From: Klebsormidium nitens
Lineage: Eukaryota > Plantae > Klebsormidiophyceae
Length of the DNA stretch: 64,000 nt
Direction of reading: 5' to 3'
Assembly (NCBI GenBank): GCA_000708835.1
Contig: DF237335.1
Coordinates: forward strand, 23,880 to 87,879
In this document: positions 36,562-64,000 of the stretch, one piece after another
Layout of the letters: each line of letters begins with the position of its first letter
Position numbering within the stretch: position 1 is the first letter of the stretch
Program-made: the position numbers and the translations under genes
The notes under the pieces: generated by a model
Databases searched by the model: none
What the model saw: only the letters and a program-made list of their open reading frames with translations
Told to the model about the DNA's origin: nothing

Positions 36562-39500
36562 TTGACGAGCGTGCGGCCGTCCCGTAGATCACAGACACGC
36601 GCGCGCGGCCGCTTCGTGTGTGTTTCAGATCGCTTTCGCAAAGCTGGCTGACTCCGAAATCAGCGTCCTCGAAATCAGGACGTCATGACAAGCTAAAGAC
36701 GGGCGTCATGATTGTCCCGGTCCAAGTTCTTTAAACCCGAACCTGCAAGATGACGACTTGTGAAGCGGCATGTTCAGGCCGCCTACGGGGAACTTGACTG
36801 TTACTTAACGTTGGAGCCACCCGCTACAGCTTGTAGTTGAGAACCTCCTAAGTGGTGCCTCCCCGTGTGTCTTCGCTTTTGAATCTCTTACGGTGGGTTT
36901 GATTCTATGTGGGCGTAAAACGGCCGTTCTCTTTCCTGGGCGGATTCTGTGCAACGTATTTTGGTCGTCTAAGTGCGGAGAAACCTCTTGGAGAAAACCT
37001 GATCCTGGATTCTACTTCTCGATCGGATGTCGATCTCAGAGAAGTCTTCGCGGCATTCACTTAAAAGCATCTGGCGATGCTGACAAATGCATCGGTGGCC
37101 CTGATTGGCCATGAGGACTCGGTGCGTTCATGATCGAAGCCGAACTGCCGCGATGTGACAGACGTGAAGACACGAAGTCGACCATTTGTTTTCAATGGGC
37201 GCCAATCTTATCATCCTCCGCACGTTACAGAGTAGCTCAGGAAAATATTGCACTTCCTGCGTTTTGAGTCTTCTGTAGCCCTAAAGGACGCCCGGCCAGG
37301 CTCGAGTGGCGGCGAAACCCTGAACTGACAACGGAGTTGCAATCTTTCTTCTTTCTTGTAGGTGTGTCGGGAATGATGATCGCGCGCTGACTGACACGTG
37401 CTGTTTTCTTCAGGCGCTGAAGCTCTTTGGGTTTCGTGCTGACGTACTCGGGCTGGTCTGACAAGATACCTAACTGCGAAGCTGCCAGTCAGGATCCTGA
37501 CTAGACAGCAATATTAGAGTCTGGGGCCGCCGGCATTTCGCTTAGAAGACTCATAAGAGAGCTCGATATTCTGGAAGTCAAATACTTCGCTCATATACTC
37601 CTACAGTTCCTGCCCGACATCACGGCCCCACAAGCTGAATGTTTCCAGAGTAATTGGAGCAATGACAAATTAAAAGCGCATAGATTGGGTCTGATAATGA
37701 GTCATCGCTCCTTCCTCGTTTGCGCTGATGCTAGCTTCCGAGTCGTTGACACAATCCGGCTGGCTCATTGTTCATTTTCTATTCTTCGAGGCGATCAAAA
37801 GCTCTTGCGGCATTGTACATACTAATCTGTGTACAACGAGCAAAAGTAAATCAGAACGCGCGCTCCTGAGGATGCTGTAATCAGTGGTGCATTCAGCTGA
37901 GCGCTGAATATACGGACGACGGTCTTTCTTCCAATATTTGGCTCTTCGAGGCGCCACCGATTGTTGCCAGTGCCAGCAGCCACGAAAATGAGTATATCTC
38001 GTTGTTCGAGGAAAATACGTCACGTATGCTCGCTTGAAATCACTTTTCTTTTCCAATTCTGTTATCAGCAATCAACGGCCAGGGATTGATACAATGTGTG
38101 AGCGAGTGCTCAGTAATTGTTTGCCGCGTCTGAGGCCGCTCGGATGTTGACAGGTGTGAACTTTCGGTTGAGACGGCAAACTTTTGGTCTCTGTCTGGTT
38201 CACTAGAGCTTGCCAAAACAGTAAAAGACTCTCCTTCGCCGATGCATCCTCATGCGCGGCATGATCAAATCATATGAGTACACACGTGCTGCAATGATGT
38301 ACGAACAGCGTAGGCGTGCTGCACGACATGAGGTGGCATGCATTGAAAGCTAGCTCCACTGTACTGCGCAACTCGGCATCGGCGCTCGAAATTCTCCGGA
38401 AGGATTTAAGTATGAAAACGTATACGATCAGCTTGAAGAGTGACATGCCTCTCAGGGAAGCGAGGCCAAGGCTCGCAGACCAGCACTAGCGCCTTCTGTA
38501 AGATGACCAACTTTCAGCACTTTTTCCAATACAATTGTGCCGCCGCTCATTTGCGGAATACATGCTGACTCGACTTAATCTTGATCAGCACGACCCCAGC
38601 ACGACCACGACGTGTGCATGTGCGGTCGCCATCAAATCAAGGGAAGCGTTCCGGGAGCGTTCCGGCCGGCTCGTATAATCTGCACTTAAGCTTGGCCCGG
38701 GGGCGTGCTACATACGTCACAGTAAACGAAGCTGACATTTGCTGATGCAAGTATATTGACGGATTTGGCCGCCCGCCGAGCAGCGTTACAGCTCCTTACA
38801 AGTAATTGAGGCTTCGGTTTGAGTTTCGTCTTCTACAGAGAAAGAGCGGCTGTCATTGCTAGCTCGTCGGGGTTACTAGCTGATTAGCGAGCCTCTGTCT
38901 GCAACGTCGGATTACTCGCCAACAGCTAGGAATTTTCCTTTATCCAATTTCCCTGTGCAGTCGTTTAGTAATTGATTGTAACAGTCGACGTAAGCAGCGC
39001 TTGCTTCACGAATCACAAAGCTGGTGGTTCGAACTTCGAAGAGTTCAGGATGACGCAATCATTGATGCAACGGAAAAGGCGGGATTTTGCGCAATCAGAG
39101 GACCTTCAGTCAGTTTACTTCAACTCACTGCCCAGTCAAGCTCAGCCTATCACAGTGAACAGACTGAACTTCAAGGCTTGAAACAAGTTTCAGAGATTTT
39201 TCTGGATTTCCCGGACCTGACAATTCCTGTGAGCTTGGAGACACTGTAACCAACTGATCGTTGGCATAAAAGCCGCCAACCGCAGCGCGCCACGTGTCCC
39301 CCCGGCCGAAAAACCTGCCCGCATGGCAGAATCGGCCAGGCTGCCTGGGCTCGGTTAGAGACTTTTGGGTCAGCGCCTGGCTTTCGAAACCCGACCTTTA
39401 ATCGGAAAAGCATCACCAGTCCTGACTCAGCTGTGTCGGAACATCCAGGCCCGGGAAGTCGGAGCTCGCTCAGACGCCTGAGGCTGCGGCCTGGGTCAGG

Positions 39501-40213
39501 CTCCCTCCCTCACGCCTCGCTGGTCTGGAACCGGCACTTCGGAATCGCAACAATTTGCCACTTCGGAGCTCGCTCAAGACGCCTGAGTCAGGCTCCCTCT
39601 TCAAAGAGCCTCGGCCCAGAACCGGCAGTTCGGGATCGCTCAACCGGGACAGTCTAAAATGGAGCTTGCTGAGACGTCTGAGTCTGACTCAGGCCTCCCA
39701 TTGCAAGGGAGTTGGAGAGAATCTGTACCTATAAAGAGAGGTCCTGCCCCCTCATACATTCATTCCTTTAGCACTCTTTCCCAGCGTCTCAGGAAAGTTC
39801 CAAAGCACGCGTGCCACTCAGATTTCAGCGACCTACAAGCATCCTTTTCTCAGAGACAACATGCCCGCCATGTTCTGCAGCGCCTTTCTTAGCAAATCAC
39901 GTACCACTAGCTTACTTTGAATTGTAGAAGGCCTGATTTGCCGTGGATCAGCTGCCACTGTGAGTGCGAGGTACCAGCGGGCTAAGCTGGTCAAGTGGTG
40001 GAGGGCAGCTCCAATCCCGCTTAGCATCTGTGCGCAGCTGCCAAGCGCATAGTGCAATGTGTTGTGCTCGAGTTGCTGGCAGTGTGGTCCGAGTTATGAG
40101 CTTCTGAACGTACGCTCTTGTGTAGGTAGTAATAAGCTGTTAGCAGAGGGGGCCAGCTTCGTCAAACAGCTTGCAGAAGAGCACCATTAAATTTGCAACT
40201 GGGGGCTGCTGGC

Positions 40214-41703
40214 ATGGCTTCTGACCTGCGTTTCCACTGGGAAAGGTAAGCCATGTTTATGAGCTGAGTATGCCCCACGTATGCCGAGCAAGAAGGGCTG
40301 ATCATTGATTGCGTTGCACTGAAAGGCCTTTCCATACTGTTGTGCTCTGACCCACAGGAAGCAAACTGTCACTTTGTGTACCTGCCTGTCTACGCTCTGT
40401 TGCTTCTTTATATGAGTCGATCTTGCAAAACCTGGACATGGCTGTGGTGGAGGTTTAGAGCAAGAGATTTAATCGGTGCTGCTAGGATCACTAGCTAATA
40501 TGGAACCCTTCCCCTCACTCGAATGCTGACTTGCACCCCCTATCTGTTTCTCTTCAGTGATCCTTCCTCCTCTGAAGAACCGGAAGGAGAGGATATTGAA
40601 GGTGTTGAGTATGCGCCCCGCTCTGTTGACGGCTCAGAGTCTGGACGCTCACTTGCGGACTTCCTCCAAGACGAAGACTGTGCCAGTATCCAAGGTCCGT
40701 CCTTCTACAGGGCGTTTAACAACGAGAAAAGCCTCAGCCCAGCTTATCTGCCAAGGGGTCTCCCAAATCTGCTAAGCAAGAAGAGACCCGCTCCGGTGAG
40801 CTTGCTTGTATTTTACATGCTTCCGGTGTGCAGCATTTGCGCGTCTTCTTCTGCCTTGATTCCATGACATAGGTTTTTGGAAAGAACCTTCCTTGCTTCT
40901 TGCAGCGCTAAGCCTTTGGCCTTCATTCGAAGACAGGCCCAGAAGTTTTGTAACTTGTCGTGCTTACAAGTCGTACCTAGGAGCAATGAATGCTTGACAC
41001 AGCTTGTGTGCTTGTGAAATCCTACTCTGCAATTCACCATTGTTGAAAAGGCTTTGCGCTGCTCTGAAGAACCATGAGTAGCTCATTTGCATGTATGCCT
41101 TGCAGGGGTATCTGCCTACGTCTCCATTCGCTTGGTCCTGTGGCAGCGCCTTCAGACAGCGGACCTGCATAACGCCCCCAAGCTGCAACTCACAGGTGAG
41201 GTAACAGGCTATTACAAACTTTGAGCAACTTGTGATCAAACCCGAGGGGTGCTACACACAATGATTTCAGCCGTTCTCCCAACCGATGATTGCACCTCAG
41301 AAGGTCCCATCAGCGACGGAGCGTTCTCATTGTGAGTTGCTTTGGAGAACGCTTGACAGGGAGGATGATGATCCATTGCGCAGACGAGGGAGTGTTCTAA
41401 GTCTGCTGATTACTGCCTCGATTCCAGATAAAGGTCTATTGCAGTCTAGAAGAAAGGTTGCTTCGTTTTGCACTTTAGAGTTGTTGAGTCTACCTCTTAT
41501 TTCACCGATCTTAGAAACTTCTTGTCTTGCATTTACAAAGTGCCTCCCCTTCTCAGGTACCTTCATCTTCTCGCGTCCTTCAAAGCAATGGCGGCAAGAA
41601 GGGTTCAAGTCAACCTTCAGCTGGCGACTGTAGTCAAAGCCTAACACTGAGAAGGAGAGGCCTCGTAAAGAAGCGGCGGCGCGTCATCCTCTCGCAAGAG
41701 TAA
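40214..41703 (+). pseudogene. Truncated paralog of exons 1-3 of the PrimPol-helicase gene (138 aa, then TAA)
   Basis: Exons 40214-40245, 40558-40795 and 41557 onward mirror 45760-45791, 46115-46352 and 46936-47121. GLVKKRRRVILSQE* versus GLAKKRRRVILSQDS (TCA to TAA). Confidence 0.8.
40388..40437 (+). repeat. 50-bp palindromic box (intron 1 of the truncated paralog)
   Basis: gtctacgctctg-26 nt-caaaacctggac. Confidence 0.75.
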
Positions 41704-42359
41704 GAAGAAGAGCAGCCGGTGCTCCCCCCCATTGGGTGAGAAGTGCGCTCAGCACAACAGCGTCCCTCTCCGCATGCAAAAGGCGGAACGTTGTGACGGT
41801 CCGTTTGAGTGACCCCAAAGGCTAATGCGACCTAAGTGGGTTTTGAGGGTCGGTGCGAACCCTTGGGGCTGCTATGCCAGTTTTCTGAGGCCTCAAGTGT
41901 GCCAGTGACTACCACGTATGGAATCCTGAGGGCTTGTTGGAGTTGAGTCAACACGGCAACGTAAATGTTGTTGCAGCCAATCATGTAGCGTCAAGCTCGA
42001 GTAGGGTTAACAACTTGGGGTGACAAACAGATGTCTATCGTGCTCTGCGCAGCGAAGGGTAGGTCTATGTGCAAATGATCGACATGTTCGATCTACCATG
42101 CATGTTCATGCTTTGAATCTGCACACGGCATCATGCAATTAATGATGCAGGTGTTTGCATTCCTTTGTTGAAGGTCATGCACATTCATATATCGATCGGG
42201 GCGTCTCGCACGCTTATGTATCATCGCCGCGCATGCACACTAAAGTCGTCACTCTAGAACAAAAGCGCGGAAAATATGCGCATCAAATCAAAGATATATA
42301 TGCATAATTGTATGCATGTTTGAGTTCACACGATCAAGCTCATACCAATGGAACATACG

Positions 42360-43064
42360 TTATGCATGATACACATGTACATCACCATCTGATCGTTTTA
42401 CACGAGTACCAAAGTATAAATACAAACAACCTCCAAACAATTGACTTGATGGAGACAAACCATCTTGCATGCCAGTAATGTAAGCGCTTGTCCGAACAAC
42501 TAGAATCGGTTTACTTCTGATCTGATCTTTTAACTCAGGAACGATGTCAAAATATGTACAGTGCTTTGGGCGGACTTTTGTCATGTGGCGCTTGTCTAAG
42601 GTTGCTAGTTGACTAGTATTCAAACGCTCTGCCACCTCAATGACTGACGCGTCCACGAGACCCAAAGGGAAATCTGAATACTTCTTCACTAACTCTAGGG
42701 CTCGTGGCAGGAACGACGGTTCCCATACGTCGACGATGAACAGCCCTTTCAAGACCCCTTCTTCAAGACACACAACTTCAATCTCCGTTCCACTATCTTT
42801 CACCAGTAGATGAGTTACCTCCGGAAGACAAAGTGACGGAAGAACCAATGGGTACCCCTCAGGGATAAGGACTGCTTCCATGATCTCATCGATGACTTTG
42901 TGATCAGCATCATTGTAGTCGAAGTACGCTTTAAGGAATCCCGCATCCACCACAAACGCATCTTCTAAACGCCGTCCCTCATGTGTCTTGACTGTTTTGA
43001 AGGTCGGAGCCATTGCCACGTTGTCTGCTTCTTTCCTTCTCGACCGCTTCCCAGCTGCAACCAA
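42360..43064 (-). CDS. VapC-like PIN-domain ribonuclease (bacterial toxin type), no intron within the domain; first ATG at 43013
   Basis: FVVDAG, LVLPSLCLPEV, ALELVKKYSDFPLGLVDASVIEVAERLNTSQLATLDKRHM..VRPKH; all four acidic PIN positions are present. A candidate acceptor (tttgctttggttgcag) just before 43054 means it could instead be a terminal exon. Confidence 0.85.
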   Translation of the reverse strand: MVAAGKRSRRKEADNVAMAPTFKTVKTHEGRRLEDAFVVDAGFLKAYFDYNDADHKVIDEIMEAVLIPEGYPLVLPSLCLPEVTHLLVKDSGTEIEVVCLEEGVLKGLFIVDVWEPSFLPRALELVKKYSDFPLGLVDASVIEVAERLNTSQLATLDKRHMTKVRPKHCTYFDIVPELKDQIRSKPILVVRTSAYITGMQDGLSPSSQLFGGCLYLYFGTRVKRSDGDVHVYHA

Positions 43065-44914
43065 AGCAAAGGTTGGAATCAGTGGTTAGAGAACTCGTAT
43101 CTCTTGGGGAGCAAACACTGTTTACAGTCTATCTATGCAAGCTGAGATGCCGCCTAGAGTAAATAGCTTCAAAGCAACTACCGTAAGGCGTAGTCTAGCC
43201 TCCCTCAGCCTAAAGGTTTTGTGCCAAATAGTCTGGTCCGTGACAACATGCACACGACTGGCCCTACCAATTACTGCTTGCAAAGGCCTACAGATTGTTA
43301 GGGCAGATGCATCAATTCCTAACATAGCTTCAACTGACAAAGAAGGGAGACCTTTCAAAACCGGCTGGAAAACCCTTTGCATATTGGCGGTTCCGCTGGT
43401 ATCCTTCAACTGTGTTGTCACTCACGCTTCGATCCACGCTTGAGAGCGTCCACGACGCATGTATCGCGCCTTCCGTTCCTCCATACTGATAGACTCGGCT
43501 TGCTCGCGCCACATGGCCCATTGGCGGTCCGTCTCGGCCCAATGTTCAAGCTCTTCCCGGTCCATAGTCTTTCCCTCAGGGATCCAAGACTCTTCAAAGA
43601 CAATTGCAACTGGTCAGATTGCAACGCAGGCATCTCCTTAGCACTGTTAGGGTTTCTGGGGCTGAGGTCCGAACGACGACATCGCAACAGCTTGTGCCCT
43701 AGCCAATCACCTTTTGCAAACATTTCATGAGCAAGTAAGAAATTTTGACAACGACAGAATACTTGAAGCAGATGATAACTGCAAGGATGCTGATAATGTC
43801 CGTCAAAGACCACATAATGGAAAGTCAGCGATCACAGCACTGCTGCAGCAAGAAATCTATGAAGCTGCCCATATCGCAGGGACCCTGATACACGAGAGAC
43901 TCCTTGAACTGCAGGAGATCTGAGAAATGCATACGTCAGCAAGAGTCTCCAAGGAGCGGCTATCATAAAAAATGTTTTGATGAAGGCGAGCAAGGCTTTC
44001 ACAAAAGGTGTCCTGAACAGGTCCCCAAAAAAACCTCAACCTTGCTGGAAAAACGAATTCGCTCAGACCTATTTCTACAACCCAGGCCCCTTCTGGAAAA
44101 TGGTGGTTAGGGAAGCTCCAGTTCAGCTCGTACGTCAACTTTGTACCAAACGCCTAATGACACTGCCCTTGCTGAATCCAGAGATGAATGCTTCTGTAAC
44201 ATGTTCCCCTACCACAAAAGTACCTAAACCCCTTCCTTTCCTCCTGTTGCTGCGAGAACATTTCTGACATAAAGAGAAGCTTGCGAGAGGAGGTTCCAGC
44301 AGCCTATACTACATACCGGTGGCTCGCTCCCCCTTGAGCAGACTTCCAGACCACATCGGACGCCCCACGTTCCTGGCCTTGGGAGCAACAATGATTGCAT
44401 GCTCCTGGTTGTCTTGCCGGTGAGGCCCCTGGCAACCACAAAAGTACACCCTTCAAGAGAAAGTCAAGGTGATTGAGCAATGGCTGAAACAACAACACCG
44501 CCGCCCCAGCAAAAGAAGTGCCAGTAGATGACGCTCCTTTCTTATGCCACACAGCTTTTTAATGTAAGCATGCAAGTCCGAGAAAGATGCAACAACGGGG
44601 TCGAACCTTGAACCTTGCAACATTAAGGTTATCCAAAACAAAAAAGAAGGGGGGTCGAGACAGAGCAATCCGCCTTATTCAGGCGTTCACGTCCAACAGT
44701 GGCCGTACACAAGGCAAAATCTCACCTGTGCAGCAGGGGCGCAGCAACGAACTTGAACGACGCGACAGGCGGAAGCCATGCGTGCCTACTTTTCGAAACT
44801 TTGCGCAACCAGTGCAAGTCGAGTTGGAGAGACTCTGCTGCGACTGGTCCAGCCAGGGTGGCTCCCTTGTCCTGCCTCCAACTAACCAAGATTGTTGACA
44901 TAAAACCCGCCAAG

Positions 44915-45440
44915 CTCAGCGTGTACCCCCCGGCCGGAAAACCTGCCCCCCTGCCCGAACCGGCCAAGCTGCCCCTCGAACTGGCCTGGGTTAGAAACTT
45001 TCTGGGTTACCTTGAAAGGGAAAGAAACCAGCCCCAAAAATTTCACGGAGGAACTGCATCGGAACAAGGCACTGATCACCTGCCGTTTCACCACGTGCCA
45101 TGCCGGCTGAACCCTAAAGTTCCCGATAATCCAGGAGTCAGGCCAGAGAGACAGCCAACACTCCCGACTGCAACCGCTGACTCGGAGCTCGCTGAGACAC
45201 CCGAGTCAGGCCTCCTTTCCAGAGAGACAGCCAACGCTCAACCGCAACAGCTGAGTTGGAGCTCGCTCAGACGTCTGAGTCAGGTTTCCCTTGAGAGAGA
45301 GCTCGGAATGGCTTCGGAAACGCTCAACCGCTTCAGATTTGCTCGAGGAAAGTCTGACTCAGGCCCCTCTCGCGAGAAGCAAACAATGGGGCTTAGGGCG
45401 GCAAAAACTCTATATAAGGAGGTCTCATTCCTCTTTTCAG
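44915..45440 (+). promoter_or_regulatory. Putative Pol II promoter of the PrimPol-helicase gene: repeated GAGTCA/TGACTCA sites and a TATATAA box (45411-45417)
   Basis: The paralogous copy at 39280-39760 also has repeated TGASTCA motifs and TATAAA (39730-39735). Both lie upstream of a conserved GGCATGG start. Confidence 0.5.
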
Positions 45441-45759
45441 ATCAGCCAAGTCTATCATCCTTCAGCCCTCCCTCCTCGCAACATCCCAGCAGCAACTTCT
45501 TTCCGACCTGCATACACTGTTCTGAAGCGCCCTCTTCAGAGCAACACCAACAGCTTCCTTCAGTCTGTAGGAGACCTTTACAGCATGCTTTTCCTGCTCT
45601 GAGCGGGCCTCTTCCTGCCTGCGACCTCCTGCACGCGAGCACCGATTTCTTGCATAGTTAGGGAAGCCAGGAAGCCCCGAGCCAGTCTCAGCATCCGTGC
45701 GCAGCTGCCCAACGCAGCTTGCAACAGCACCAATACAGCTGCAACTGAAGACTGCTGGC

Positions 45760-48700
45760 ATGGCTTCTGACCCGCGATCCCACTGGGAAAAGTAAGCCGC
45801 TGCTCATGAGCTGAGTATGGCCTCAGTATGCAAAGCCAGAAGGGTCTTCTTGATAAAATTTGATTGAGACTGGTACGGATCGTGATGGAATTGCACTGAA
45901 AGGGGCTTTTCCATATTTGATGTGCTTCGAATCATTCGAAGAAGACCTGTCCATGTTCTGTCGCTTCTTTATATGTGTCTCTGATGCAAAACCTGGACAT
46001 GGCTGTCGTGGAGGTTTAGAGCGAGAGGTTTAAACGATGCTGCTGAGATCACTAAGCTGAGCCCTGTCCTCCAAAACCCAAAGGATGACCTGCATCCTTA
46101 TCTATCCTCTCCAGTGATCCTTCCTCCTCTGAGGAATTGGAAGGAGAGGATATTGAAGGTGTCGAGTATGCGCCCCGCTCTGTTGGCGGCTCCCAGTCTG
46201 GACGCTCGCTGGAGGAGTTCCTTCAAGACGAAGACTCTGCCAGCATCCAAGGCCCGTCCTTCTACAGGGCGTTCAGCAATGGGAAAAGCCTCAGCCTAAC
46301 TCAGCTGCCAGAGGGCGTCTCAACTTTGCTCAGCAAGAAGGAATTTGCTCCGGTGATTTTATCGGCTTCTGCTTCTGATTTTGCCGTGCTTCCGAGACAG
46401 CTTCTGTGATTGTACAACGGCACCTCAGTTGACTGCCATCTAAATCTGTTCAGTGAACCACCGTTGAGTAGGCTCTGGTCTGCTGCTGAAAATGCATAGG
46501 TTGCTCACCGGCATGTATGCCTTACAGGGTTACGTGCCCACCTCTCCATTCGCTTGGACTTCCGGTAGCGCCTTTGGAAAGCGGATATGCATAACCCCGC
46601 CAAGCAACTTCCAGGTGAGTTAAGAGGCTAGTACAAACTTGCGCAACTTGTGATTAAAACTTCGTGATACTGCACAGGTTGATTGCAGTTGTTCTCCAAT
46701 CGTTGCACCTGAGAAGATTCCATCAGCGTGGATCGTTTCTGTTCCAGGCTTGTTGTTGCTCAACAGGACGGCCTTAGATGCTGCCTACAGTGACCTTTCC
46801 AGTATGTTGACAACCGCCTCAATACCAGATGATGGTCTGGTGCACTTTGTATAGGCTGTTGAGTCTGCTTCTAACTTCTTCGATCCTTCAGTCCACTTCT
46901 CCCTCGTTTACTCACTGCCTTCTCTCCTCATGTAGGCGCCATCATCTCGTTGCATCCTGCAAAACGTTGGTGGCAAGAGGCTCGCAAGTGAAGCTTCAGC
47001 TGGCAATTGCAGTCCGAGTCCAACATCGAGAAGGAGAGGCCTCGCAAAGAAGCGTCGGCGCGTCATCCTCTCGCAAGACTCAGAAGACGAGCAGCCGGTG
47101 GCCCCCCTGCCTCTTGTAGAGGTGAGTCGTGCTTGCATACAAGTTTCGTCCAGGTTTTGCAGATGCGAATTTTCAAACGACAAAACGTGGATATCAGCTG
47201 GAGTCCCTTTTCTGCAGCCAGCTCTGCTCGTCTTCTGTGTTTTCTTGATGCAGAAGCTGGACAGGCGCTTAGAACTCAAATGTCGAGGCACGTCCCTAAG
47301 CTTGGAAATAAAAGAAGTGACGGTCCAGGTTCTGTCGTTTCTTTATACGCATCTCTGATGCAAAACCTGGACGGCAAAGATCTCAAGGCCCCAGATTCTT
47401 TACTCTCAAAACTTGCGAAAGTCGAGGCACGTGCCCAAGGTCAGAAGCAAAATCAAGTCGCCGTCCAGGTTCTGTCGTTTCATTACACGTGTCTCTGATG
47501 CAAAACCTGGACAGCACAAAACTTCAAGGCTCTAAAACAGTGAAAAACCTTCGCAACAATGCAGAAAGCGGGCAGTGCCAACTGCTTAGCACTCAGATCA
47601 ACGCCTTCCATTTGTTGGCCTCGATCAAGTTCTTTGAAACGGGGGGCAAAGCCAGCATTTCTGACGCACACTCCTTCGTCCTTTCTGCAGGTGGCAATCG
47701 GTCAACCCGTTGATAGGGTGCGCGCAACTGATCGCAGCCAAGAGCATGGTTTCGCACAAGAGCAAGCTCAGGTACAGCGCCTGGCCATAAGGACCGTTTA
47801 AGGTTAGATGAAGGCAAGTTGGTAGAAGCTCGCAGCAGACTCAATGGCAGACACGCACGTGTGAGCAGTCTAGTCGGGAACGAGAAACCCCAAATCAGCC
47901 CTTCAAACGATTACAGTATCTTGCATCCGTTTGTGCAATCCGATTCATACATTGGAAGAGCCGCTCAAAGCTGAACGGCTTCCTCACGAGTGTCGTTTCA
48001 ATTGCTTGCTTAAGTGAGCCGTTCCCTCCGTCAGCTTCCGAAGTGTTGTCTCCTTTTGGCAGCGTTCTTGCAATACTTCTGCTCGATATTCACCTTGCAA
48101 AGAATTGAGGCTGCAAAAATCAATCATGTGATGCCCGTCTAGCAGAAGTAGCGTAATTTCTCAGGCTCTGTTGCAGATCCCTGGTCGTGTGATGGTGCAC
48201 ACCGAGCGTGACGGCACAATCCAGACAGTGCAAGAGAACAAACTCGGAACGGCCTTCTTCTCCAAGCTCAGTCGAGCAAAGCTCCACTACCAAGACCCTA
48301 AGAACGGGCCGCAGGGTTTCAGCAAGCGGTATGCTGCTCTCTGCGAGCACAAGGTGGAGCTGCAACTTCTCGACCACAAGGGCTATCGCAGCTATGGGTC
48401 GTACTCAGACTGGCCGACCGCGCGGGACTTCACTTCGCAGCAGCCTTTCCTCGAGGAGGTGCTTGTCGAAGGGAAACCCTGCAAGCCGTTCCTAGACATG
48501 GAAAGAGATCAGGGGTTGCCCGAGGGGGAAACTCTTGAGAGCATCATCAGCCAGTTTCAAGAGGCCATCACGAAGATCTTTGCGGAGGACTACGCAGTCG
48601 AGATCCAAGAGCGGGACTTCAACTGGGTCCACTGCGACTACGGACCCGGCGGCAAGTTCAGCGTCCATCTCGTCATCTCAACGCATGGGCCGCGACAAAT

Positions 48701-54186: not shown

Positions 54187-54540
54187 TCATTTACCTTTGG
54201 CATCCTTGCAGACCTCGAGTATCCCTTTGGCGATTGACAGTAGAAGCGCTGCCTCATTTTCAGAATATCCACCGCTTTCATGATCTATTATAGAGGCAGA
54301 GACTATGCTGAAAACATCATCCCAAGAGACAATCAACGTATCTTGATCGCAGACCTGATAACGGAACAGTAGTACGCCCTTCCGAATCAAAGTCATGTCG
54401 ATCGGAACTCGAAGCCCTTGATCCACGATCCTTTCATAGCGAAGAGGTCCGAAGCTCTCAATCTCGTTGATGACTGGGAGCAAGCTATACAAACGGGGAT
54501 TTGACTGCTTTGGCACGTAGTATTGAAAACCTCGCTCCAT
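54187..54540 (-). CDS. Hypothetical protein (117 aa)
   Basis: Its ATG overlaps the TAA of the upstream ORF (TAATG at 54538-54542); globular-looking composition. Confidence 0.55.
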   Translation of the reverse strand: MERGFQYYVPKQSNPRLYSLLPVINEIESFGPLRYERIVDQGLRVPIDMTLIRKGVLLFRYQVCDQDTLIVSWDDVFSIVSASIIDHESGGYSENEAALLLSIAKGILEVCKDAKGK

Positions 54541-55397
54541 TATTCTGTTATTAGAAAGGAAAAGAAATCCGGCATGCTGTAGGCTCTGTCCCCCCAGTCT
54601 TCATCACTGTCGACTGCAACACATTTGAACGTTGTTGCCTTGCTTCCTCGAGCCTTTCCAGTGGCTTTTGAAGTGCCTGTAGTAGCTGATTGTTTCGCCT
54701 TACCATTACAAGTTGACTTCCTCTTGCAAGTCTGCTTTGAAGCCTTGCTCGATGCTTTGCACTTCTTCGTGCTCTCTTGCTTCTTCTTTGCGGAAGCGTG
54801 CATCTCGATGAGCTCGTCGACCGGTATCTTAGTTGCTGATGTTGAAAAAGTCCCCTGGAACGGGAGGCCAACAGGTCGTTCACACTTTTTGATTGGAGAG
54901 ATCTTCACTTCATATCCGAATTCCTTCTTGGCTGAACCTCTAGTCGATTCCTGCAGCAGAACACTCACAGTGCAGGGTGCTTTGATGGCTGCACCGTTAC
55001 ATTTGAGTGCCCGAAAGAGCTGGCTTCCAGCTCGAGTGCCTGCTTGTGAAACACGCCCCTTGTCAGCATCAATCTCGAGACGTGTGTCTTCTAGAAGGCT
55101 CGAAGCATCTGATTGGTTATGGTCAAGCGCAAGAAGCACTTTAAAGGATCGTTTCAATGCAATATCCATTAGGCCGGCTGTATGATGTAACGACAGACAA
55201 TAAACCTGAACCCAAAGTGCTTCATGCCCCCTACTTTGGAGGCTGGCCCACTGAAGCACTTCGATCGTCTCGTTGATCTGGCAAGGGTTTTGACAGACAA
55301 TCATCAGAAGTTGCCCTTCTATAAGCAGATTGTTGGCTACATAAAGCACATTACAAAGTTGAACGGCCCCAGTCACAATTCTGAGGGGCAGATTCAC
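54540..55397 (-). CDS. Hypothetical protein with a Lys-rich C-terminal tail (start uncertain; ATG options near 55303 or 55169)
   Basis: 858-bp open frame coupled by TAATG to the next ORF. Confidence 0.5.
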   Translation of the reverse strand: MNLPLRIVTGAVQLCNVLYVANNLLIEGQLLMIVCQNPCQINETIEVLQWASLQSRGHEALWVQVYCLSLHHTAGLMDIALKRSFKVLLALDHNQSDASSLLEDTRLEIDADKGRVSQAGTRAGSQLFRALKCNGAAIKAPCTVSVLLQESTRGSAKKEFGYEVKISPIKKCERPVGLPFQGTFSTSATKIPVDELIEMHASAKKKQESTKKCKASSKASKQTCKRKSTCNGKAKQSATTGTSKATGKARGSKATTFKCVAVDSDEDWGDRAYSMPDFFSFLITE

Positions 55398-55894: not shown

Positions 55895-56962
55895 ATGGAC
55901 TCAGAAGCATCCGTTCAATCGAGCACAGAATCCACTTCCAATAATCAAGGGGATGTACAGCGAAAGATATCATCAGGTGAGGCAGCTTTGCGCAACCTGT
56001 TTAAGGATGGAAAACGCGCTAACATAACAATTCAACAGTACCTCAACAGTGTGCGAATAATCCATCACCTGGTGACTGGCAAAAAGGTTTTGCCATCCAC
56101 GTTGGATTGGATCCAATCAGTAGATATCATACTTGAAAAACTCAACGCAAAGTACCCTAACCCTGGCACCTATAAGAATAAACTTACCCCATTAATGGTT
56201 TGTGCTCACGCGAAGGGTTGGGAGGAAACTTATAAAAAGTATTTTGAGAGCTTTTCGGAGAAGAAGTTGGCTCTAGAGAAGAAGGCCGATGAACAGAAGG
56301 CAACGGAGAAAGAAACTGCGAATTGGATCTCGATGAACGAACTCAAGGCCAAGGCAGAAGACCTTAACCGGCAGATAAGAAGGAGCATCATGCCGAATCA
56401 TAAAAACAACGGTGGATCAAGCCTGAGCAGAGAAGAAGTGAAGGTAGTGTTTCAGCACTTATTGCTTGCGTTCAATATTCACGAGCCACCTAAGCGAAGA
56501 GATCTCAGCGGTCTCCCTCTTTAGAAAGCAGACGGAAGCTTCTACTGCGATCAAGCTAGAGCAGCCTATAAGGATACCGGCAACTGCCTTCGTGAAAGCA
56601 CAAGTGGTGAATTCATGCTTGTACTGAAGACATACAAGACGAGCAAGCGATATGGAACAAAAGAGTTTGAACTCACACAACGCCTAAACAACTACATCAA
56701 ACGGTCGATTGAGTTAGTTCCTCGAGGTTTTGTATTGTCTCGGTTGGGGAATCCGACAGAAGGGATGTCAGACAACTATCTTACAAAATTCATGGCATCG
56801 ATAACGTTCCCTAAAGGGAAGCATCTGAACCAAAACCACCTCAGACACCTCTTCATCAGCGAACATTTCGCAAATGATCATTCAATCGCTGAGAGGAAGC
56901 AGTTAGCCAATCGCATGATGCACGACTGGTCAACTGCAATGATCACCTATGAAAGAAAGTGA
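55895..56962 (+). pseudogene. Tyrosine recombinase/integrase (PLV/virophage-like), ~355 codons with one in-frame TAG at 56522-56524
   Basis: The 209-aa and 115-aa ORFs are in the same frame, joined by 30 sense codons (KADGSFYCDQARAAYKDTGNCLRESTSGEF). Motifs: PPKRRD (R), YKTSKRYG (K), NHLRHLFIS, RMMH, TY. Confidence 0.85.
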
Positions 56963-56989: not shown

Positions 56990-59470
56990 TTAAGCCGATG
57001 AGATTAGTAAAGTTGGGTCAGAAGCCCAGGATCCGTCCCAATGAACTTCGTCGACTCTTAAACGGATTTCTTGCAGCCGTTTCTCCAGCTCACTCCTTGT
57101 TGGAAAGATCAAGCCGCGACCACTGGTGTCTTTGTAACCTTCCAGTCCAAGTGTCCGTTTGATCCGACCAATCAAAACGTCTTTTTGTTGCGGCGGATCT
57201 TCTTTCGCGCCTTGATTGTCTACGAAGGACCTGTAAGTTCGGAAGATGGTGGCGCTTAGCACCTTCGTCTTCTTATCTGATGAGAAGTTACCGTTGTCCA
57301 GCAACCCGCAAATCATCTTCGCCCAAAATGGAATCGAGTGCTCCCTGAGAGCAGAGCTCCACTTGCTTTTCGGGATCTGCTTGGGGTTCCAAGTGTCGAT
57401 GCCTTCTCTTGACATCAAGTACCGGTAGAAATGTTCAGCTGTAGTGCTAGTGAGGCTTTCACAAAGCCGATCAAAGTACGGTTGATCTCCGATTCTAGAG
57501 TCGGAGGCTTCAAAGCATGCATACCTTCTGTCCGTCGCTTCTTTCTTTATTGGCCAGTCCTCGTTAGTATTGAACCAGTAGTTTGCAAGGTCGGGTACTT
57601 GAAGGGGATCGATTCCCTTCTTTTCCAAAATGGTTGAATTCTGGGTGATTAGACTCTTGAGTCGATTATTTGATTTGTATGCCCCACCCCAACTGCTTAC
57701 TTCATCGAAGCATACCAAGAGGAGGTTTGCAGCTATTCCATTGAATTTGCCAATTACCTTCTCCATATCATTACAGTACAGATAGTATCGAGATCCGATG
57801 ACATGTTTCCCCACAAAATCGGTCACAATCGATTTGCCTGCGCCCTGATCAGACCTAAACACAAGTGCAGTACCAATCTTCTTGTGCGGTTTTTGCACAA
57901 GGTGAGCTAACCAGTTTAGAAGGTAGTCCGCTACAGCAGGATCATTGTCCGCCAATACCTCGTTGATATGCTTCAGGAGAAGATCGATTTGTAACATGTC
58001 AACAGGTTGATGCGCTTCTTGAACGAAGGGAAACCCGTAAAACATGTTGTAGTTGCTAGGAGACACCAAACTAGGGTTCGCTTCAAAGACTACCTTGTTG
58101 AGCGTCCTTCTCGCTGATGACTTGCACCAGACCTTCCCAATGTTGCCAATCTTGAGACTGTCCAGGTTGAATGATTCGGACCGTTCCAGGAACTCCGCTC
58201 TTGTTCGAAGGATGCTGTCATTTGGCACCCATGCAGTGCCTCTTTCAACGAAAAGGGTCTCGATAAAGAGAACTTTTGAGCTGCCGTCTAGAACGCAGAA
58301 GTAGTGGTTCATCGTATCGATAGCAATCTGTGTGAGTTGTTGGCACATGTTTTGATACGGCACTTTGTCGACATTGCTTTTGCTGCTTGATATGATTCTC
58401 TCCGCTTCCTCGATAGGGCGCAGATCAAAACGTGCTTTGGAGTTCAAAAGCGAAGGCCAATGGTGCAGCCCGAGAAGAACTCTTGGTCGTTCTTTGCATC
58501 CTGTTGACAGGCAGCGGTATTCCATGCAAATTCCGTTGCAGATGATGCTAAAACTGTTGCTCGTGTGTTCCTCTCGGTAAGGACAAACCCTGCTCTCCTT
58601 CACTCTGAACTTTAAGATGGCTTCCCCATCTCGAAACTTGATGCCTCTGTAGAAACTTGTTTGATCGTTGCATCTACTTCGCAGTAGCTGCGTTGCAACT
58701 TGGATTGCCTTTTCGGCCTCGATGGAAGAGGTCGCTTGCTGAGACGAGAGTTCTGTGGTAGTTGTCTGTTTTGCTTTTGCTTTGCTCACATTTGATGTAT
58801 TATTGCTGGGGTGTTTTGCCGACCCCTGGGCAGCTTGCTTTGTGGAGTCTTGAGCGTTCAAGATATCTACGAGCCACAACGGAAGGCAGGCAAGCTTCGT
58901 TTGCCAAGGGGACCTTAGCCATCTGTATGAATGCTCTTCACCGTCACGAATGATGGTAGTGGGGGGTGCGAAGCAGATGCCATTGCCTCTGAAATCGATT
59001 GTCGTTTGGCTGGAGTTGATGTATAGCTTGGTCGCATCTGCCTTTCGTTCAAGCCCGGGAGAATCTGCTCGAAAGTAGTAGTGCAAACCGCCACTCTGTG
59101 TTTCGGCTGTCCACGTGAGAGGTTCGCCGTGTGCTTGTGTCAAGCTTTTCCAGACATCAAGACCATTAGCGACGGCATTGCTTTCATTCATCTTGGGCAA
59201 GTCGATATCAACCATGATAATGCTATTTGGTCCCGTTCGTCCGCAGAGAAGGGCAAGGGCATTCTTGTCGGAACAATCACGAATAAGATCTTCGTGCAAC
59301 CCCCAAGAAACATCATCCACGATGCTTGAGTATAAGCATCTAAAGTTACTTGCGTCTTTCTTCTTATCCACTTTGTTCCATGTAAGCTTGAGCGTAACCG
59401 GCAGGAGATGAAGGCTCCGATACGATGAGATGCTTTCATTGAGGTCCGGATTCATTTTAAAGCTGGGCAC
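56990..59470 (-). CDS. Bifunctional primase-polymerase (Prim-Pol) + Zn motif + SF3 (D5-like) helicase, intronless, 826 aa (first ATG 59455)
   Basis: IIMVDID, AETQSGGLHYYF, IDFRGNG..FAPPT; CPYREEH...C...C; Walker A SDQGAGKS, Walker B VCFDE, motif C YWFNTN, DRRY. Confidence 0.9.
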   Translation of the reverse strand: MPSFKMNPDLNESISSYRSLHLLPVTLKLTWNKVDKKKDASNFRCLYSSIVDDVSWGLHEDLIRDCSDKNALALLCGRTGPNSIIMVDIDLPKMNESNAVANGLDVWKSLTQAHGEPLTWTAETQSGGLHYYFRADSPGLERKADATKLYINSSQTTIDFRGNGICFAPPTTIIRDGEEHSYRWLRSPWQTKLACLPLWLVDILNAQDSTKQAAQGSAKHPSNNTSNVSKAKAKQTTTTELSSQQATSSIEAEKAIQVATQLLRSRCNDQTSFYRGIKFRDGEAILKFRVKESRVCPYREEHTSNSFSIICNGICMEYRCLSTGCKERPRVLLGLHHWPSLLNSKARFDLRPIEEAERIISSSKSNVDKVPYQNMCQQLTQIAIDTMNHYFCVLDGSSKVLFIETLFVERGTAWVPNDSILRTRAEFLERSESFNLDSLKIGNIGKVWCKSSARRTLNKVVFEANPSLVSPSNYNMFYGFPFVQEAHQPVDMLQIDLLLKHINEVLADNDPAVADYLLNWLAHLVQKPHKKIGTALVFRSDQGAGKSIVTDFVGKHVIGSRYYLYCNDMEKVIGKFNGIAANLLLVCFDEVSSWGGAYKSNNRLKSLITQNSTILEKKGIDPLQVPDLANYWFNTNEDWPIKKEATDRRYACFEASDSRIGDQPYFDRLCESLTSTTAEHFYRYLMSREGIDTWNPKQIPKSKWSSALREHSIPFWAKMICGLLDNGNFSSDKKTKVLSATIFRTYRSFVDNQGAKEDPPQQKDVLIGRIKRTLGLEGYKDTSGRGLIFPTRSELEKRLQEIRLRVDEVHWDGSWASDPTLLISSA

Positions 59471-59486
59471 CCCTCTATGGTAAGTA

Positions 59487-59765
59487 CTAAGGAAAATAAT
59501 TCCCGGAATCCGGACGCGTCAAAAACTTGCCTTCTTGCACATACCCGGCAACTACAAGCTTTGCCATGGTGGAGGGTCGAAGCCTCTTGCCTTCGGAATA
59601 TCGAATTAAAGCTTTGCGTAGACATATCTCCACTTTAGCTTTGCTATAGTGCTTACGAGACCAATCTCTATATTTGTCGAGATTCGAATGTCGGTAGCGC
59701 GCTTCATACAGCCGCCGGTGATGGTTGGGATTAGGTTCTCTTGTGTCTAAGATTGACTCAGCCAT
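59487..59765 (-). CDS. Small basic hypothetical protein (92 aa), likely paralog of 53711-54124
   Basis: YRDWSRKHYSKAKVEICLRKALIRYSEGKRLRPSTMAKL; lies directly upstream of the Prim-Pol gene on the same strand. Confidence 0.6.
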   Translation of the reverse strand: MAESILDTREPNPNHHRRLYEARYRHSNLDKYRDWSRKHYSKAKVEICLRKALIRYSEGKRLRPSTMAKLVVAGYVQEGKFLTRPDSGNYFP

Positions 59766-60103: not shown

Positions 60104-63100
60104 TCATCTATACAAGAGAGCTGCGCGAACTGCCGGCGACCATAGTTTGACTCTGCCAGCAATTTTAATCTTCTGGTCATCAACACGTGTCAATTCTGCG
60201 TTGCGCCCGCTTACTACATTAGCTAGAATGATCATGAATGCCTCAAGACCACTAAACCAAGATAGCACCTTGAATTTGATCAGGAAGGAGTTGACGCTCT
60301 CGACGGCACTAGTATTCACCCAACGTACAGTGTCGTATAAATCAGGGTTATATTGGGGGCCACACTTGTGCGCCTCCTGGCCAGTCTTCTGGAAGTGGAA
60401 CCTGCAGAGTGCAGTATCGAAGCATTTTACTAGATGCACGCATACATCTTTTCAGAGGCGGTTGCTTTGAGCACACATTAGTATGAGCCATCAAACAAAA
60501 GAAATAACTCTAGATGAAGTGCCAAAGTATTCTCATTGAAATGGAGCCTTGCAATCTCTGCCGTCCAGGTTTTGCAGATTAGATGCATATATAGAAAAGA
60601 CAAAACGTGGACGGCGACTTGTTCTGTTCCCAAGCTTAGGCACGTGCCTCGACTGTCGCAAGTTCTGAGAGTAAAGCATCTGGGGCTCTAAGATCTTTTG
60701 CCGTCCAGCTTTTGCAGATGAGATGCATATATATAAACGACAAAACGTGGACCGCGACTTGTTCTGTCCTCAAGCTTAGGCACGTGCCTCTCGACTGTCG
60801 CAAGTTCTGAGTCCAAAAAGTTGATTATCTTGTCCTAGATCAACGACCAGTTCGCAAAAGCATGGACGTATTTGCGGTTTACACACTCACCGGTCGATCA
60901 GAAACCGTACGTCAGCAAAGAATGCAGGCTCTCGCCTCATACTGTACGCCCTCAGCTTGCACGAATTATCGTAGATCACATAAGAAGGCAGTGTGTGCCG
61001 GTGGAGGCGGGTGTACAACACCGCGAACGGATCACGAGGACTCTCCCCCCGGAGCATCACGTGCCAGCCGTAGATCACCCTGTGAGGGCAGCAGAACACA
61101 AAGCCCCCCTTTGTATGCTTTTGCAGCCGCTTGCCCGCTTTCTCACTCTTGGCAGCCGCAACCTTGGCATCATATTCCCCGACCGTGAGACCGCTTTTAC
61201 AGCGGTGCTCCTCGCTGCTTTCGACGGCCCGACCAAGCTCATCCTCGAACGGCTTGTACTGGGGCAGGGGCCGCTTCTGCTCCCAACCGGGAAGGGGATA
61301 GCAGCCGAGCACAGTCTGCTCTCGGCTGTACGGGTGGTTTTCGGGGAGCGCTTCGAGGAGCCGTCCGTCCCCGGAGAGCCCTAGCCGATCGTGCAGCAGC
61401 TCGCGCTCGGCTTGGTTAAGAGCATACACGGAGGGGTTCGGTGGCTGCAAAGCCTCGACACCGGGAAGCAGCCTGTTCGCTCTCCCTCTCTAGAAGTTGT
61501 AGCTCTCCTCTCGCTCCTCGTTCCAAGACCCGGGGACGTCCCGTCGCAACTGTAGCAGCCAAACGCAGGCATCCAACCCCTCGATAGCAGACAGCGCCCA
61601 TCCGGCTCGACCGACCCCCAGCCCGACCGCCCCGCGTCCGAACAACGTCAGCCGGTACAAGTGGTGCAGCGTGGGGAGAAAGAAGGCCGGAAACACTCCG
61701 TCGTGGTTGTCCAGCAACCGACGAAGGATGGGCGCATGCTCGGCCAGCACGGCCTTTCCCCCCTCGTCTGCTGAACCCTCCAGAAGGATCGTCCGAACAA
61801 CAGCCAGAGCCGCTCCATGCTGGATCAGGTTGCTGTCGTCAGCGACGGTCTGAGGGGCCCCCAGAGCGTAGAGCACTTCCGCCCACCACTTTCGCGGCGA
61901 ACGCACTCGACCGGGGTTGACGCCCGAAGCAGCAAGGGTCTCCCCCCGGATCCCCTCCAACAGCAGCCGTGCAGCTCGGTTCTTCGATCGGATCTGCCCG
62001 ATCTGCTCCTGCAGAAGGCGCCTCCTCTGGACAGTGCAGCAGGACGGGCTCGGCATCCGCATCGTCGGGGTCGGGGACGAACTCCGAGACGAGCTCCACA
62101 TCATCGCGATCTAACGCAACCTAGGTAGAAGTCAAGAAGTCAAATTCCCGGAGATGATCAAGTGGGCATCATCTGAAAGGCGCGTTTAGATTTAGGTCGA
62201 CAGTGCTAAAAGATCTCGTGTCAACCTCTTAAGTCCCACTGCAACAACCTCGGCTAAGCATTAGAAGGATTCATCGCGCCTATACGGAGCAGACTGGCAT
62301 CGAACAGCGTGCGCAACTTGCGCTCAATCGCTCCAAAGTCGACGTCAGATTCAACACCATGGTTGCCACAAAGACTGAAAAGCTCCGCAGTTTGAGTTTA
62401 GGATAAATAACTCTGCTTGAAGGAAGTTGCGCCGTGCACATTTGCCAGAACTCTAGCAGTTTGAGCGAGGATCTCGTCCGTTCAGCGTGGGGAGGAAATG
62501 GTCTGGAGCCACCTTCTGGCACCTTTGATTATCACTTATAAAGTAAAAATGTATATAGGATTGGTATACACTTTTTCAATGGCCTGGCACCATGGCACCT
62601 TGGGCACCTCATTTTCAATCATGGAACTTTCAATTCACAAAAACCTGAACGAAGAAAAAACAAGAGGTGGTGGTGTCCAGGGTGCCATTGGGTGAGAACC
62701 TTACAAAGATATTTTTGGTCACAAGCATGATCCGTTCCACCTACCAGCAGCTCTTGGAATTCACTCCCACTCAGCTGCGCCCCCAGATCCGGGTCCTTTG
62801 GATGATGTTGGCTGTACCGCGCCAGCAGAGCCCGCAGCTCCGGCTGGTGGATCAAGCGCCGCTTCAGCCCCCGCCCCTCCAGCGCAGTCGCACTGAAGTT
62901 CACACCGGCTTCCATGTGCTTCACGACGGTCCCCCCCAAACTGTCACGACTCGGAGCTGTGAAAGGCCGGAGTTCGCTTGCCGCCGTCCGCGCCAGCCCC
63001 CCTTTCGATCGGCTACCATCCGCGCACGCTAGCCCGACAATACCGTCGCAGAGCAGAACGTCTGGGTGAGGCCCGCAAAGGCTGCAGCACTCGAGGATGC

Positions 63101-64000
63101 TTCGCCCACACAGCCGGAAGAAGGCCAAGCAGACCTTCCGCCACGACTCCTCGCTGAGAGAGGGAGCGGCTCCCGGTGAGAAGAGCGTCCGAACCGCCTT
63201 CTGTGCGCTGATCAGGGCGCTGAACGCGGATCCGGTCCCTTGAACCGAACGGAGCAGGAGCTGGCAGGACTCTTGCGTGACGATGATGGCTCTGCTCCAC
63301 GCATACAGGCCAAGCGCTTCCCCGTTGAAGTGGACGGTGTGCTTCAACGGGCATCCGCAGCAGTAGATCCGGACCTTGACCTGCGAGGATGTGCGCGCGC
63401 TTAGCCAACGTCCGTCCACGTTCTGTCATTCATATATGTGTGTCTTTGATGCAAAACCTGGATAGCTTTTTGAAGCTCCGCACTCGAACAAGAATGCGCT
63501 CAAAACGTCGTCCAGTTTTTGCCAAGAGTGCGCGCTCAAGTCGCCGTCCACGTTTTGTCATTTATATATATGTGTCTTTGATGCAAAACCTGGACAGCCT
63601 TTTGAAGCTCTTCGCTCAGATAACCGTTTGGCAGTTTCTGCGAATTTTTATACCTGTCTCATATGCAAAACCTGAATTGCACCAATCGGAACCGGACACG
63701 TGGCAACGCCTCGTGCGGACACGTGGCAGGCACCCTCACCTCAAGCTGAGAGCTCTCAATCTCAGAAAGCTGCAGTAAAAACGAGCATCTTCTCACTTTG
63801 ATCTGGCAGAAGTTTGCATCACGTACCTCTTGCGACCATCGCAGCGAATGCACGCATGCGCTCTGCAGCAACGCCTGCCACGCGATGCCACAGGGAGCCA
63901 GCCCGGGCTTTGGGCAAGGTGCAGACAAGCACCCCGCGGCGCTCAGCTCCTCGAAGTCCCTCTGCACGAGCACGCTCACTCTCACGGGCCGCCGCATCGG
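60104..64000 (-). CDS. KDZ (Kyakuja-Dileera-Zisupton)/HMGXB3-like transposase with a cysteine-cluster domain; spliced, 5' end beyond the window; one in-frame TAG at 61490-61492 and an unresolved junction near 62010
   Basis: Exons >64000-63827, 63380-62745, ~62124-60891, 60401-60104. Motifs: CSLCGPHPDVLLCDG, GGFVFCCPHRVIYGWHVMLRGESPRDPF, YVIYDNSCKL, FLIDR|FHFQ...HKC, NTSAVESVNS. Confidence 0.82.
60563..60752 (-). repeat. Two 50-bp boxes (60563-60612, 60703-60752; 140-bp unit) in the last KDZ intron
   Basis: gtccag(g/c)ttttgcagat...gacaaaacgtggac; inverted copy of the 47270-47535 block. Confidence 0.9.
63414..63677 (+). repeat. Two 50-bp boxes (63414-63463, 63546-63595) and one degenerate copy (~63628-63677) in a KDZ intron
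   Basis: gtccacgtt(c/t)tgtcatt...gatgcaaaacctgga(t/c). Confidence 0.9.

Follow-up and report, generated by a model that had tools for sequence, protein, structure and literature searches.

A candidate composite mobile element of Klebsormidium-type algae that links a KDZ-type transposase gene to virus-type replication genes and palindromic repeat arrays

Polinton-like viruses (PLVs) integrate in algal genomes and usually combine a primase-helicase with a tyrosine recombinase (YR) within 15 to 30 kb (PMC10120064), and genes like those of nucleocytoplasmic large DNA viruses (NCLDVs), including a D5 helicase, have already been reported in Klebsormidium (PMC5294986). Teratorn, found in fish, is a piggyBac transposon fused with a herpesvirus (PMC5822658). 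In the Kyakuja-Dileera-Zisupton (KDZ) superfamily, ends and an 8-bp target duplication have been documented only for Zisupton (PMC12730594). Here, we analyzed a 64,000-nucleotide (nt) stretch of Klebsormidium nitens DNA (contig DF237335.1; "the window" denotes this whole stretch), in which a KDZ-like transposase gene lies near a PrimPol-UL9-type helicase gene, a second primase-helicase gene, a YR-like gene, and arrays of a palindromic repeat that we call the box. The window looks to be of an intron-rich eukaryotic genome type, with few long open reading frames (ORFs) and a GC content of about 0.50. We favor, with moderate confidence, the reading that the region from 44.9 kb to beyond 64.0 kb is a single, partly decayed copy of a multicopy family of large composite mobile elements in Klebsormidium-type streptophyte algae.

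We propose that elements of this family join four things: a KDZ-type transposase gene, a replication initiator gene with palindromic arrays, a small ORF, and an optional cassette. Excision and integration would be the job of the KDZ-type DDE transposase, as we infer. The initiator, of viral or plasmid type, would comprise a PrimPol domain, a UL9-type superfamily 2 (SF2) helicase, and a DUF8368 C-terminal domain, and would always be accompanied by arrays of a lineage-specific palindrome of about 50 to 75 nt with an AT-rich center. We take these palindromes to be candidate cis sites of the initiator, most likely origin- or iteron-like binding sites, from which replication might start. The third component would be a small conserved ORF of the type that we call o54540, and one subfamily would add a cassette of a tyrosine recombinase, a Prim-Pol domain, and a D5-type helicase, as in polinton-like viruses. 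The replication genes probably derive from polinton-like or giant viruses, with morphogenesis genes lost since, and nuclear introns would have been gained later, several of them apparently consisting of the element's own box arrays.

We looked into the gene content of related loci (numbered L001 to L094), the nearest of which belong to K. nitens (GCA_000708835.1) and to metagenome contigs. In the metagenomic L009/L010, the helicase gene (+ strand), two o54540-like ORFs (- strand), and the KDZ gene (- strand) follow each other in the order and orientation of the window, at about 52% protein identity and with no YR/Prim-Pol cassette. An initial annotation, made from the sequence alone, had proposed that helicase and KDZ genes form a linked unit, and their co-occurrence at this other locus bears it out. 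L014, from K. nitens, has a KDZ gene, a small ORF, an intact Prim-Pol gene, a YR gene, and an o54540-like ORF, again in the window's order and orientation. The idea that the cassette is a private insertion at the present locus was rejected because L014 shares it; its lack in L009/L010 and its position beside KDZ in L014 fit an optional or captured module. The annotation's view of the cassette as cargo or a nested element agrees with L009/L010, and L014 shows a cassette that recurs next to the transposase gene. An exchangeable or optional part of the family is the best fit for this second replication/recombination cassette.

Two further loci keep parts of the arrangement. In L003 (K. nitens), the helicase is followed by a Prim-Pol homologue (E 7e-48). 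L002, the closest relative (about 80% nucleotide identity in blocks), contains a helicase gene with at least two in-frame stops, then an o54540-like ORF, then a weak match to the YR start (E 0.005, 30 amino acids [aa]) at the contig end. We regard as established the homologies of these genes, their recurrent linkage and order, and the existence of many copies beside different host genes. A separate observation concerns L008, a compact, gene-dense 37-kb contig that holds a DUF5906 protein (3776-5848, - strand) and a helicase (10001-13165, + strand) 4 kb apart; to judge by this locus, two replication helicases may have been paired for a long time.

We then analyzed the initiator gene (48171-53268, + strand). 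It was recognized as four homology blocks (48171-48929, 49577-50125, 50425-51420, and 52114-53238), with three introns between them; all four are stop-free and align to consecutive parts of single proteins in relatives. Searches were made one block at a time. A PrimPol-like domain makes up the first, a UL9-type SF2 helicase the third, and the DUF8368 region, as in the relatives, the fourth. The helicase block matches Pfam Herpes_ori_bp (E 9e-16, 57.6 bits against a cut-off of 20) and the NCBIfam family of CyRepA1 plasmid replication proteins (E 1.9e-31). A family profile of 40 full-length relatives had matches in the PDB, with E values of 2.7e-37 for UL9-type origin-binding proteins, 2e-24 for human PrimPol, and 1e-8 for the poxvirus D5 primase domain; the window's PrimPol block searched alone gave an E value of 0.033. 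An exhaustive search with the helicase block yielded 1939 relatives, most of about 1050 aa with the helicase in mid-protein, and a scan of viral contigs with this block as a single protein found nothing.

Strong GT-AG sites, in phase, bound two of the three introns. Consisting largely of box units, introns 1 and 3 are found in L002 and are missing from L001, L003, L009, L011, L004, and L008, a set that covers K. nitens and intronless viral-type relatives. Since the dN/dS ratio of the helicase coding blocks against L002 is 0.20 to 0.23, these blocks are under purifying selection. The DUF8368 region (52111-53268) gave an AF2 model with a pLDDT of 83.7 and a pTM of 0.82, mainly helical with one beta hairpin; a UL9-like C-terminal domain was considered here and ruled out by the fold search. 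On two viral contigs (L044, 9116-9532; L038, 6916-7500), a Prim-Pol-type (PF09250-like) segment stands directly upstream of a UL9-type helicase, which suggests an exchange of primase domains within the family. Another relative, the GC-rich (0.64) and intronless L004 (13431-14012), lies on a contig whose end carries tandem repeats of about 55 nt and a perfect 55-nt inverted repeat and resembles the tip of a linear element.

The box, about 50 nt long, is an imperfect palindrome whose center is AT-rich. Eight exact-pattern matches were observed in the window with none expected, and a box profile found 14 copies, all between 40.4 and 63.6 kb, with zero in positions 1-39000. The copies are carried in units of about 130 to 230 nt, frequently in tandem, and they are placed ahead of the primase block, within two of the helicase introns (1 and 3), past the helicase stop, and in two KDZ introns; the palindrome that the initial annotation had noticed in introns of both genes is thus real. 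Upstream of the primase block, an array of three units, two of them in a tandem of about 140 nt, occupies 47145-47532, and single copies lie within the element's 5' segment (45945-46000) and, in degenerate form, within a partial second copy of that segment (40383-40439). Intron 1 contains weak to moderate units in a 232-nt tandem (49007-49475, + strand), intron 3 contains two units (51657-51906, + strand), and one unit of opposite polarity (53490-53627, - strand) follows about 220 nt beyond the helicase stop, a polarity switch also seen in L009. In the KDZ gene, two units (60544-60790, - strand) sit in an intron or linker that all relatives have and that is enlarged in the window. Two to three more (63395-63687, + strand) lie in an intron at a site where L009, L012, and L013 have no intron and where L014 has unrelated tandem repeats. 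These repeats of L014, 110 to 125 nt long and unlike the box, occur at 10308-10478, the KDZ intron position, and again at 23292-23578, 13 kb off and inside a D5_N gene.

We found the box in every helicase-bearing locus of the clade (the window, L001, L002, L003, L009/L010, and L011) and found none in the KDZ-only loci L012 to L014, in window positions 1-39000, or in 1.15 Mb of viral loci. The box goes with the helicase and not with KDZ, and the earlier suggestion that it unifies all modules was not supported by the comparison. A genome-wide intronic repeat was rejected for the present window on the zero count in its other 39 kb, which upholds the view that the box is specific to the element and no repeat of the window as a whole. 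The arms come in a separate variant for each helicase lineage, at recurring sites, namely, upstream, between blocks B and C, and, in reversed polarity, just past the stop. When 12 copies from the window were aligned with 12 from L009, 85.9% of the arm cells were paired versus 29 to 45% with the partner slid, and three arm positions were altered on both sides at once between the two lineages. Arm symmetry is therefore maintained, as judged from a few events in two lineages that fit a hairpin and a symmetric protein site alike; single-stranded boxes folded better than shuffles (z-scores of -2.2 to -5.6). The association of box and helicase, with its compensatory arm changes, and the purifying selection on the helicase are established.

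The KDZ-like transposase gene (60104-64000, - strand) has its 3' part in the window and contains at least one in-frame stop; about 2.2 kb of its 5' end lies beyond the window. Its match to Pfam KDZ (PF18758) has an E value of 0.007 (16.5 bits), and that of L009 has one of 2.7e-4 (21.2 bits), against a cut-off of 26.6. Upstream of the KDZ match on the gene strand is a CxC4 match, also under the cut-off (E 0.012 in the window and 1e-3 in L009), and both sub-threshold matches recur in two homologues in the expected order. We found 57 KDZ homologues, all of them either from K. nitens, with at least 16 gene models, or from algal-type metagenome contigs. The copies are diverged, reside on different contigs, and lie next to different host genes (an aminotransferase, a CLC channel, and a riboflavin-synthesis gene). 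Scans with the KDZ alignment found no match in viral contigs and nothing in the metagenome. So far, we have met the family only in Klebsormidium-type green algae.

Between the helicase and KDZ genes, GC content falls to 0.45 to 0.47 across approximately 53.7 to 59.8 kb. The stretch begins with two small ORFs (53711-54124 and 54187-54540, both on the - strand), the first encoding a Cys-rich protein of 137 aa with a weak PHROG match to endonuclease VII (E 9e-4). Next comes the conserved partner ORF o54540 (54540-55397, - strand), for which tblastn found homologues in L009 (E 1.6e-37), L014 (E 1.8e-22), and L002 (E 2e-7). It stands beside the helicase and/or KDZ gene in L002, L009/L010 (two copies), and L014, and it had no match in Pfam, PHROG, or NCBIfam.

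The cassette itself is made up of the YR-like gene and the second primase-helicase. The latter (56990-59470, - strand) is an intact, intronless ORF of 826 aa with a Prim-Pol (archaeo-eukaryotic primase, AEP) domain (PF09250, E 3e-13, 50.8 bits) and a DUF5906/D5-type superfamily 3 (SF3) helicase (PF19263, E 2e-17, 64.6 bits), both above the Pfam cut-off; it also matched a primase in the PDB (E 7e-14) and DNA primase in PHROG (E 7e-32). Together with the Herpes_ori_bp gene, this ORF confirms the two primase-helicase fusions that the initial annotation had reported. The protein is 55% identical to the L014 ORF over 823 aa and 32% identical to that of L003. An exact look-up of the protein returned no record, a word-based search returned a single match of bacterial or phage type with an uninformative context, and scans of viral contigs and the metagenome found nothing. 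A small conserved ORF (59487-59765, - strand) separates Prim-Pol from KDZ and has a homologue at the equivalent position in L014 (E 1e-12).

The YR-like gene (55895-56962, + strand) contains one in-frame stop. Neither its pieces nor the L014 ORF matched Pfam Phage_integrase, and its C-terminal piece resembles ORFs of five viral contigs, two of which have Phage_integrase matches (E 3e-5 and 5e-5, 24.2 and 23.6 bits against a cut-off of 27.1). The L014 homologue is intact as far as read and stops short of the catalytic C terminus, and the fold model, built on a 7-row alignment, was poor (pLDDT 45). The identification of the window gene as a YR is thus indirect and sequence-based, and any part that it plays in the element is something we infer. 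As for the two integrases that had been announced, both gene types do recur in related loci; the assignments are softer than claimed, with KDZ under its Pfam threshold, the YR without a Pfam match of its own, and in-frame stops in both. NCBIfam gave no match for Prim-Pol, the YR, or a PIN-domain ORF described below.

We next turned to viral relatives. The family profile retrieved 80 loci with distant helicase relatives from IMG/VR, including giant-virus bins, megabase contigs, and many contigs of about 20 kb, and a YR-like ORF lies near the helicase in 5 of the 80. One of them, the 23-kb L067, combines a YR-like ORF, a helicase of 1219 aa, and a Pox_A32 packaging ATPase and is a polinton-like virus genome; its content matches the usual make-up of such viruses. 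L067 also has four 62-nt palindromes with AT-rich centers right after gene ends.

The left part of the region comprises two related segments. The element's 5' segment (44883-47107, + strand) contains a 74-nt tandem repeat (45143-45284) and an upstream exon-like ORF (46137-46409), and its conserved upstream exon has a dN/dS of 0.18 to 0.41. A partial second copy (39247-41728, + strand), which the initial annotation did not mention, is 69 to 75% identical to 44883-47107 and 72 to 79% identical to positions 4705-6506 of L002; its exon-like ORF (40523-40867) is kept in L002 and L009. From its sequence, the interval from 39.2 to 41.7 kb appears to be a truncated extra 5' piece of the element. Between the two copies, where GC content is lower, lies an intact PIN/VapC-like ORF (42360-43064, - strand), with another ORF upstream of it (43122-43421, - strand). 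The PIN ORF scores above the cut-off for Pfam PF01850 (E 3.8e-7, 31.2 bits against 23.6) and matches VapC26 in the PDB over almost its full length (E 1.3e-11), and the label of a bacterial-type PIN RNase is therefore sound. No PIN homologue was found in L001 to L094, and VapC as an element component, also part of the initial annotation, was ruled out on this ground. By this comparison, the ORF is a neighbor and not a conserved part of the family, possibly acquired separately from bacteria.

Some repeats elsewhere in the window were also recorded. A 766-nt stretch at 8747-9507 matches its own reverse complement with 92.7% identity and is therefore a long inverted duplication. The host-like region flanking the element has a 13-nt tandem repeat (35190-35285, 7.4 copies) and a 30-nt repeat rich in GC dinucleotides (33254-33314). 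Rfam and tRNA scans of the region found nothing.

We asked which virus-type functions are absent. Pfam scans of 35 ORF translations from 39 to 64 kb, which include every ORF of at least 130 aa, gave no match to capsid, packaging ATPase, or family B DNA polymerase (PolB) families, in agreement with the initial annotation. Major and minor capsid families were unmatched in Pfam and PHROG scans of the window ORFs, which have low sensitivity for divergent capsids, and no A32/FtsK-type packaging ATPase was found in the window scans. The two primase-polymerase domains are the only DNA polymerases present.

Several observations weigh against the reading of a composite mobile element. Terminal inverted repeats and a target-site duplication were not found, the KDZ-side end lying outside the window. 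A short-word comparison of left ends with KDZ-side ends gave matches at chance level only and no common end motif, and three aligned left boundaries shared a promoter-like stretch with no clear terminus. No empty site or extrachromosomal form was seen. Given this and the two primase-polymerase domains as sole polymerases, the earlier term "self-synthesising" is conjectural. The present copy has stops in both the YR and KDZ genes, whose assignments are under the Pfam cut-offs. One helicase intron of the three has its strongest donor and acceptor in different phases, which implies either that the site is unusual or that a single frameshift, at most, is present. The DUF8368 model had no fold match among solved PDB structures, including the UL9 DNA-binding domain (best E 0.39), so that structure lends no support to box binding by this protein, which is suggested by the association of box and helicase. 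The palindromes of L067, just after gene ends, raise an alternative role in transcript ending. L014 has a D5_N gene in place of the window's UL9-type helicase, and L001 and L011 carry helicase and boxes with KDZ lacking within 5 to 10 kb downstream, so that the helicase unit may stand alone.

This last point would be expected from a recurrent nest, in which three independent elements, the helicase and box unit (about 9.5 kb in L001), a KDZ transposon, and a virus-like YR/Prim-Pol element, are co-located through target preference. Such a nest would also explain why L009 has no cassette, why the orientation of Prim-Pol with respect to the helicase is reversed in L003, why cassette GC is below that of the flanks, why boxes accompany the helicase only, and why a truncated extra 5' segment is present at 39.2 to 41.7 kb. 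However, gene order, orientation, and the small ORF between helicase and KDZ are kept at about 52% protein identity, the placement of the cassette is common to the window and L014, and the window's KDZ introns have been invaded by box arrays; we consider the nest unlikely. Quite improbable, in our judgment, is a host gene cluster, in which old virus-derived genes were domesticated, amplified by segmental duplication, and are now immobile, intron-bearing nuclear genes. The canonical splice sites, the dN/dS of 0.2, the annotation of K. nitens copies as ordinary gene models, and the missing ends all suit this explanation, but it sits poorly with at least 16 diverged KDZ copies on different contigs with unrelated host neighbors, with stops in copies (YR and KDZ in the window, helicase in L002), and with module content that differs between copies.

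The box by itself could instead be a small nonautonomous mobile repeat, similar to miniature inverted-repeat transposable elements (MITEs) or introners, that makes or swells introns and is not a replication site. We hold this to be on the unlikely side, even though the box-holding introns 1 and 3 of the helicase gene have no counterpart in K. nitens, L009, L011, or the intronless relatives, arrays lie in KDZ introns that are lacking in some relatives, and the units are tandemly arrayed. Against it, there is no copy in the 39-kb intron-rich flank, each lineage has its own arm variant at the recurring helicase sites (upstream, blocks B/C, and past the stop), the conserved unit is longer than the palindrome, and a target duplication was not noticed in the alignment, no systematic test having been made. 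An assembly chimera of unrelated sequences, which the richness of the region in repeats might have favored, is very improbable indeed, the same adjacencies being shared by assemblies made independently, that of K. nitens and those of two JGI samples.

Returning to the composite element, we found no published description of a KDZ transposase combined with virus-derived replication genes and palindromic repeats, and literature searches for KDZ names together with primase, and for PrimPol and UL9 together with transposon, gave none in the library covered. A bolder version, which we put forward as possible but doubtful, is that the family represents an unnamed class of capsid-less, self-replicating transposons of streptophyte algae. 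In this class, KDZ would move the unit, co-evolving palindromic arrays would serve the PrimPol-helicase initiator as origins, the replication slot would accept different occupants (UL9-type, D5-type, or Prim-Pol-type), and the repeat arrays would seed new spliceosomal introns. If the linkage holds, Teratorn would be joined by a second, independent fusion of virus-derived replication genes to a cut-and-paste transposase, here in the lineage closest to land plants and with KDZ, a superfamily about whose biology little is known. The case would also offer a sequence-level system for the loss of capsids and genomic residency of polinton-like viruses, and natural co-variation across lineages would pair an initiator with its likely DNA sites. 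Introns made of the element's own repeats would, in addition, bear on intron gain.

Compared with known systems, the element shares with polinton-like viruses and virophage-type elements (Polisuviricotina) the pair of primase-helicase and, putatively, tyrosine recombinase, a pair that recurs, with a YR-like gene, in viral contigs of about 20 kb. PLV elements are recognized by a primase-helicase or pPolB together with a YR or rve, and the window holds two primase-helicases and a YR-like gene, the latter identified indirectly. Unlike these viruses, it has no capsid, penton, protease, or packaging ATPase that we could find in the window, and it adds a KDZ transposase, nuclear introns, and the initiator of PrimPol and UL9-type SF2 helicase. 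With KDZ transposons, it has in common a putative CxC cluster followed by a putative KDZ domain and many dispersed copies per genome, whereas its Pfam scores are below the cut-off and neither ends nor the 8-bp duplication were seen. Cargo is familiar in this superfamily, TET/JBP genes being carried by KDZ elements in fungi. Like Teratorn, the element links a cut-and-paste transposase with virus-derived replication genes in one genomic unit; Teratorn retains a nearly complete virus genome, including capsid genes, whereas the window element has only replication and recombination genes, and the two differ in transposase superfamily, host, and virus lineage. Self-synthesizing transposons (Polintons/Mavericks and casposons) likewise encode an integrase or transposase with their own DNA replication proteins, but they have a protein-primed family B polymerase, whereas polymerase-like activity in the window would come only from the two predicted primase-polymerase domains. 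Introners and MITEs are also short inverted-arm repeats that make introns lacking in relatives, whereas the box is confined to the element within the window, lineage specific, and tied to one gene, with no target duplication noticed. The herpesvirus UL9 and CyRepA1 initiators have a homologous helicase core, and the origin bound by UL9 is laid out as two inverted arms around an AT-rich center, as is the box. The C-terminal domain of the window protein, by contrast, has no detectable likeness to the UL9 DNA-binding domain, and the boxes, unlike the sites of UL9 and CyRepA1, form many tandem arrays, partly intronic, at which binding is predicted.

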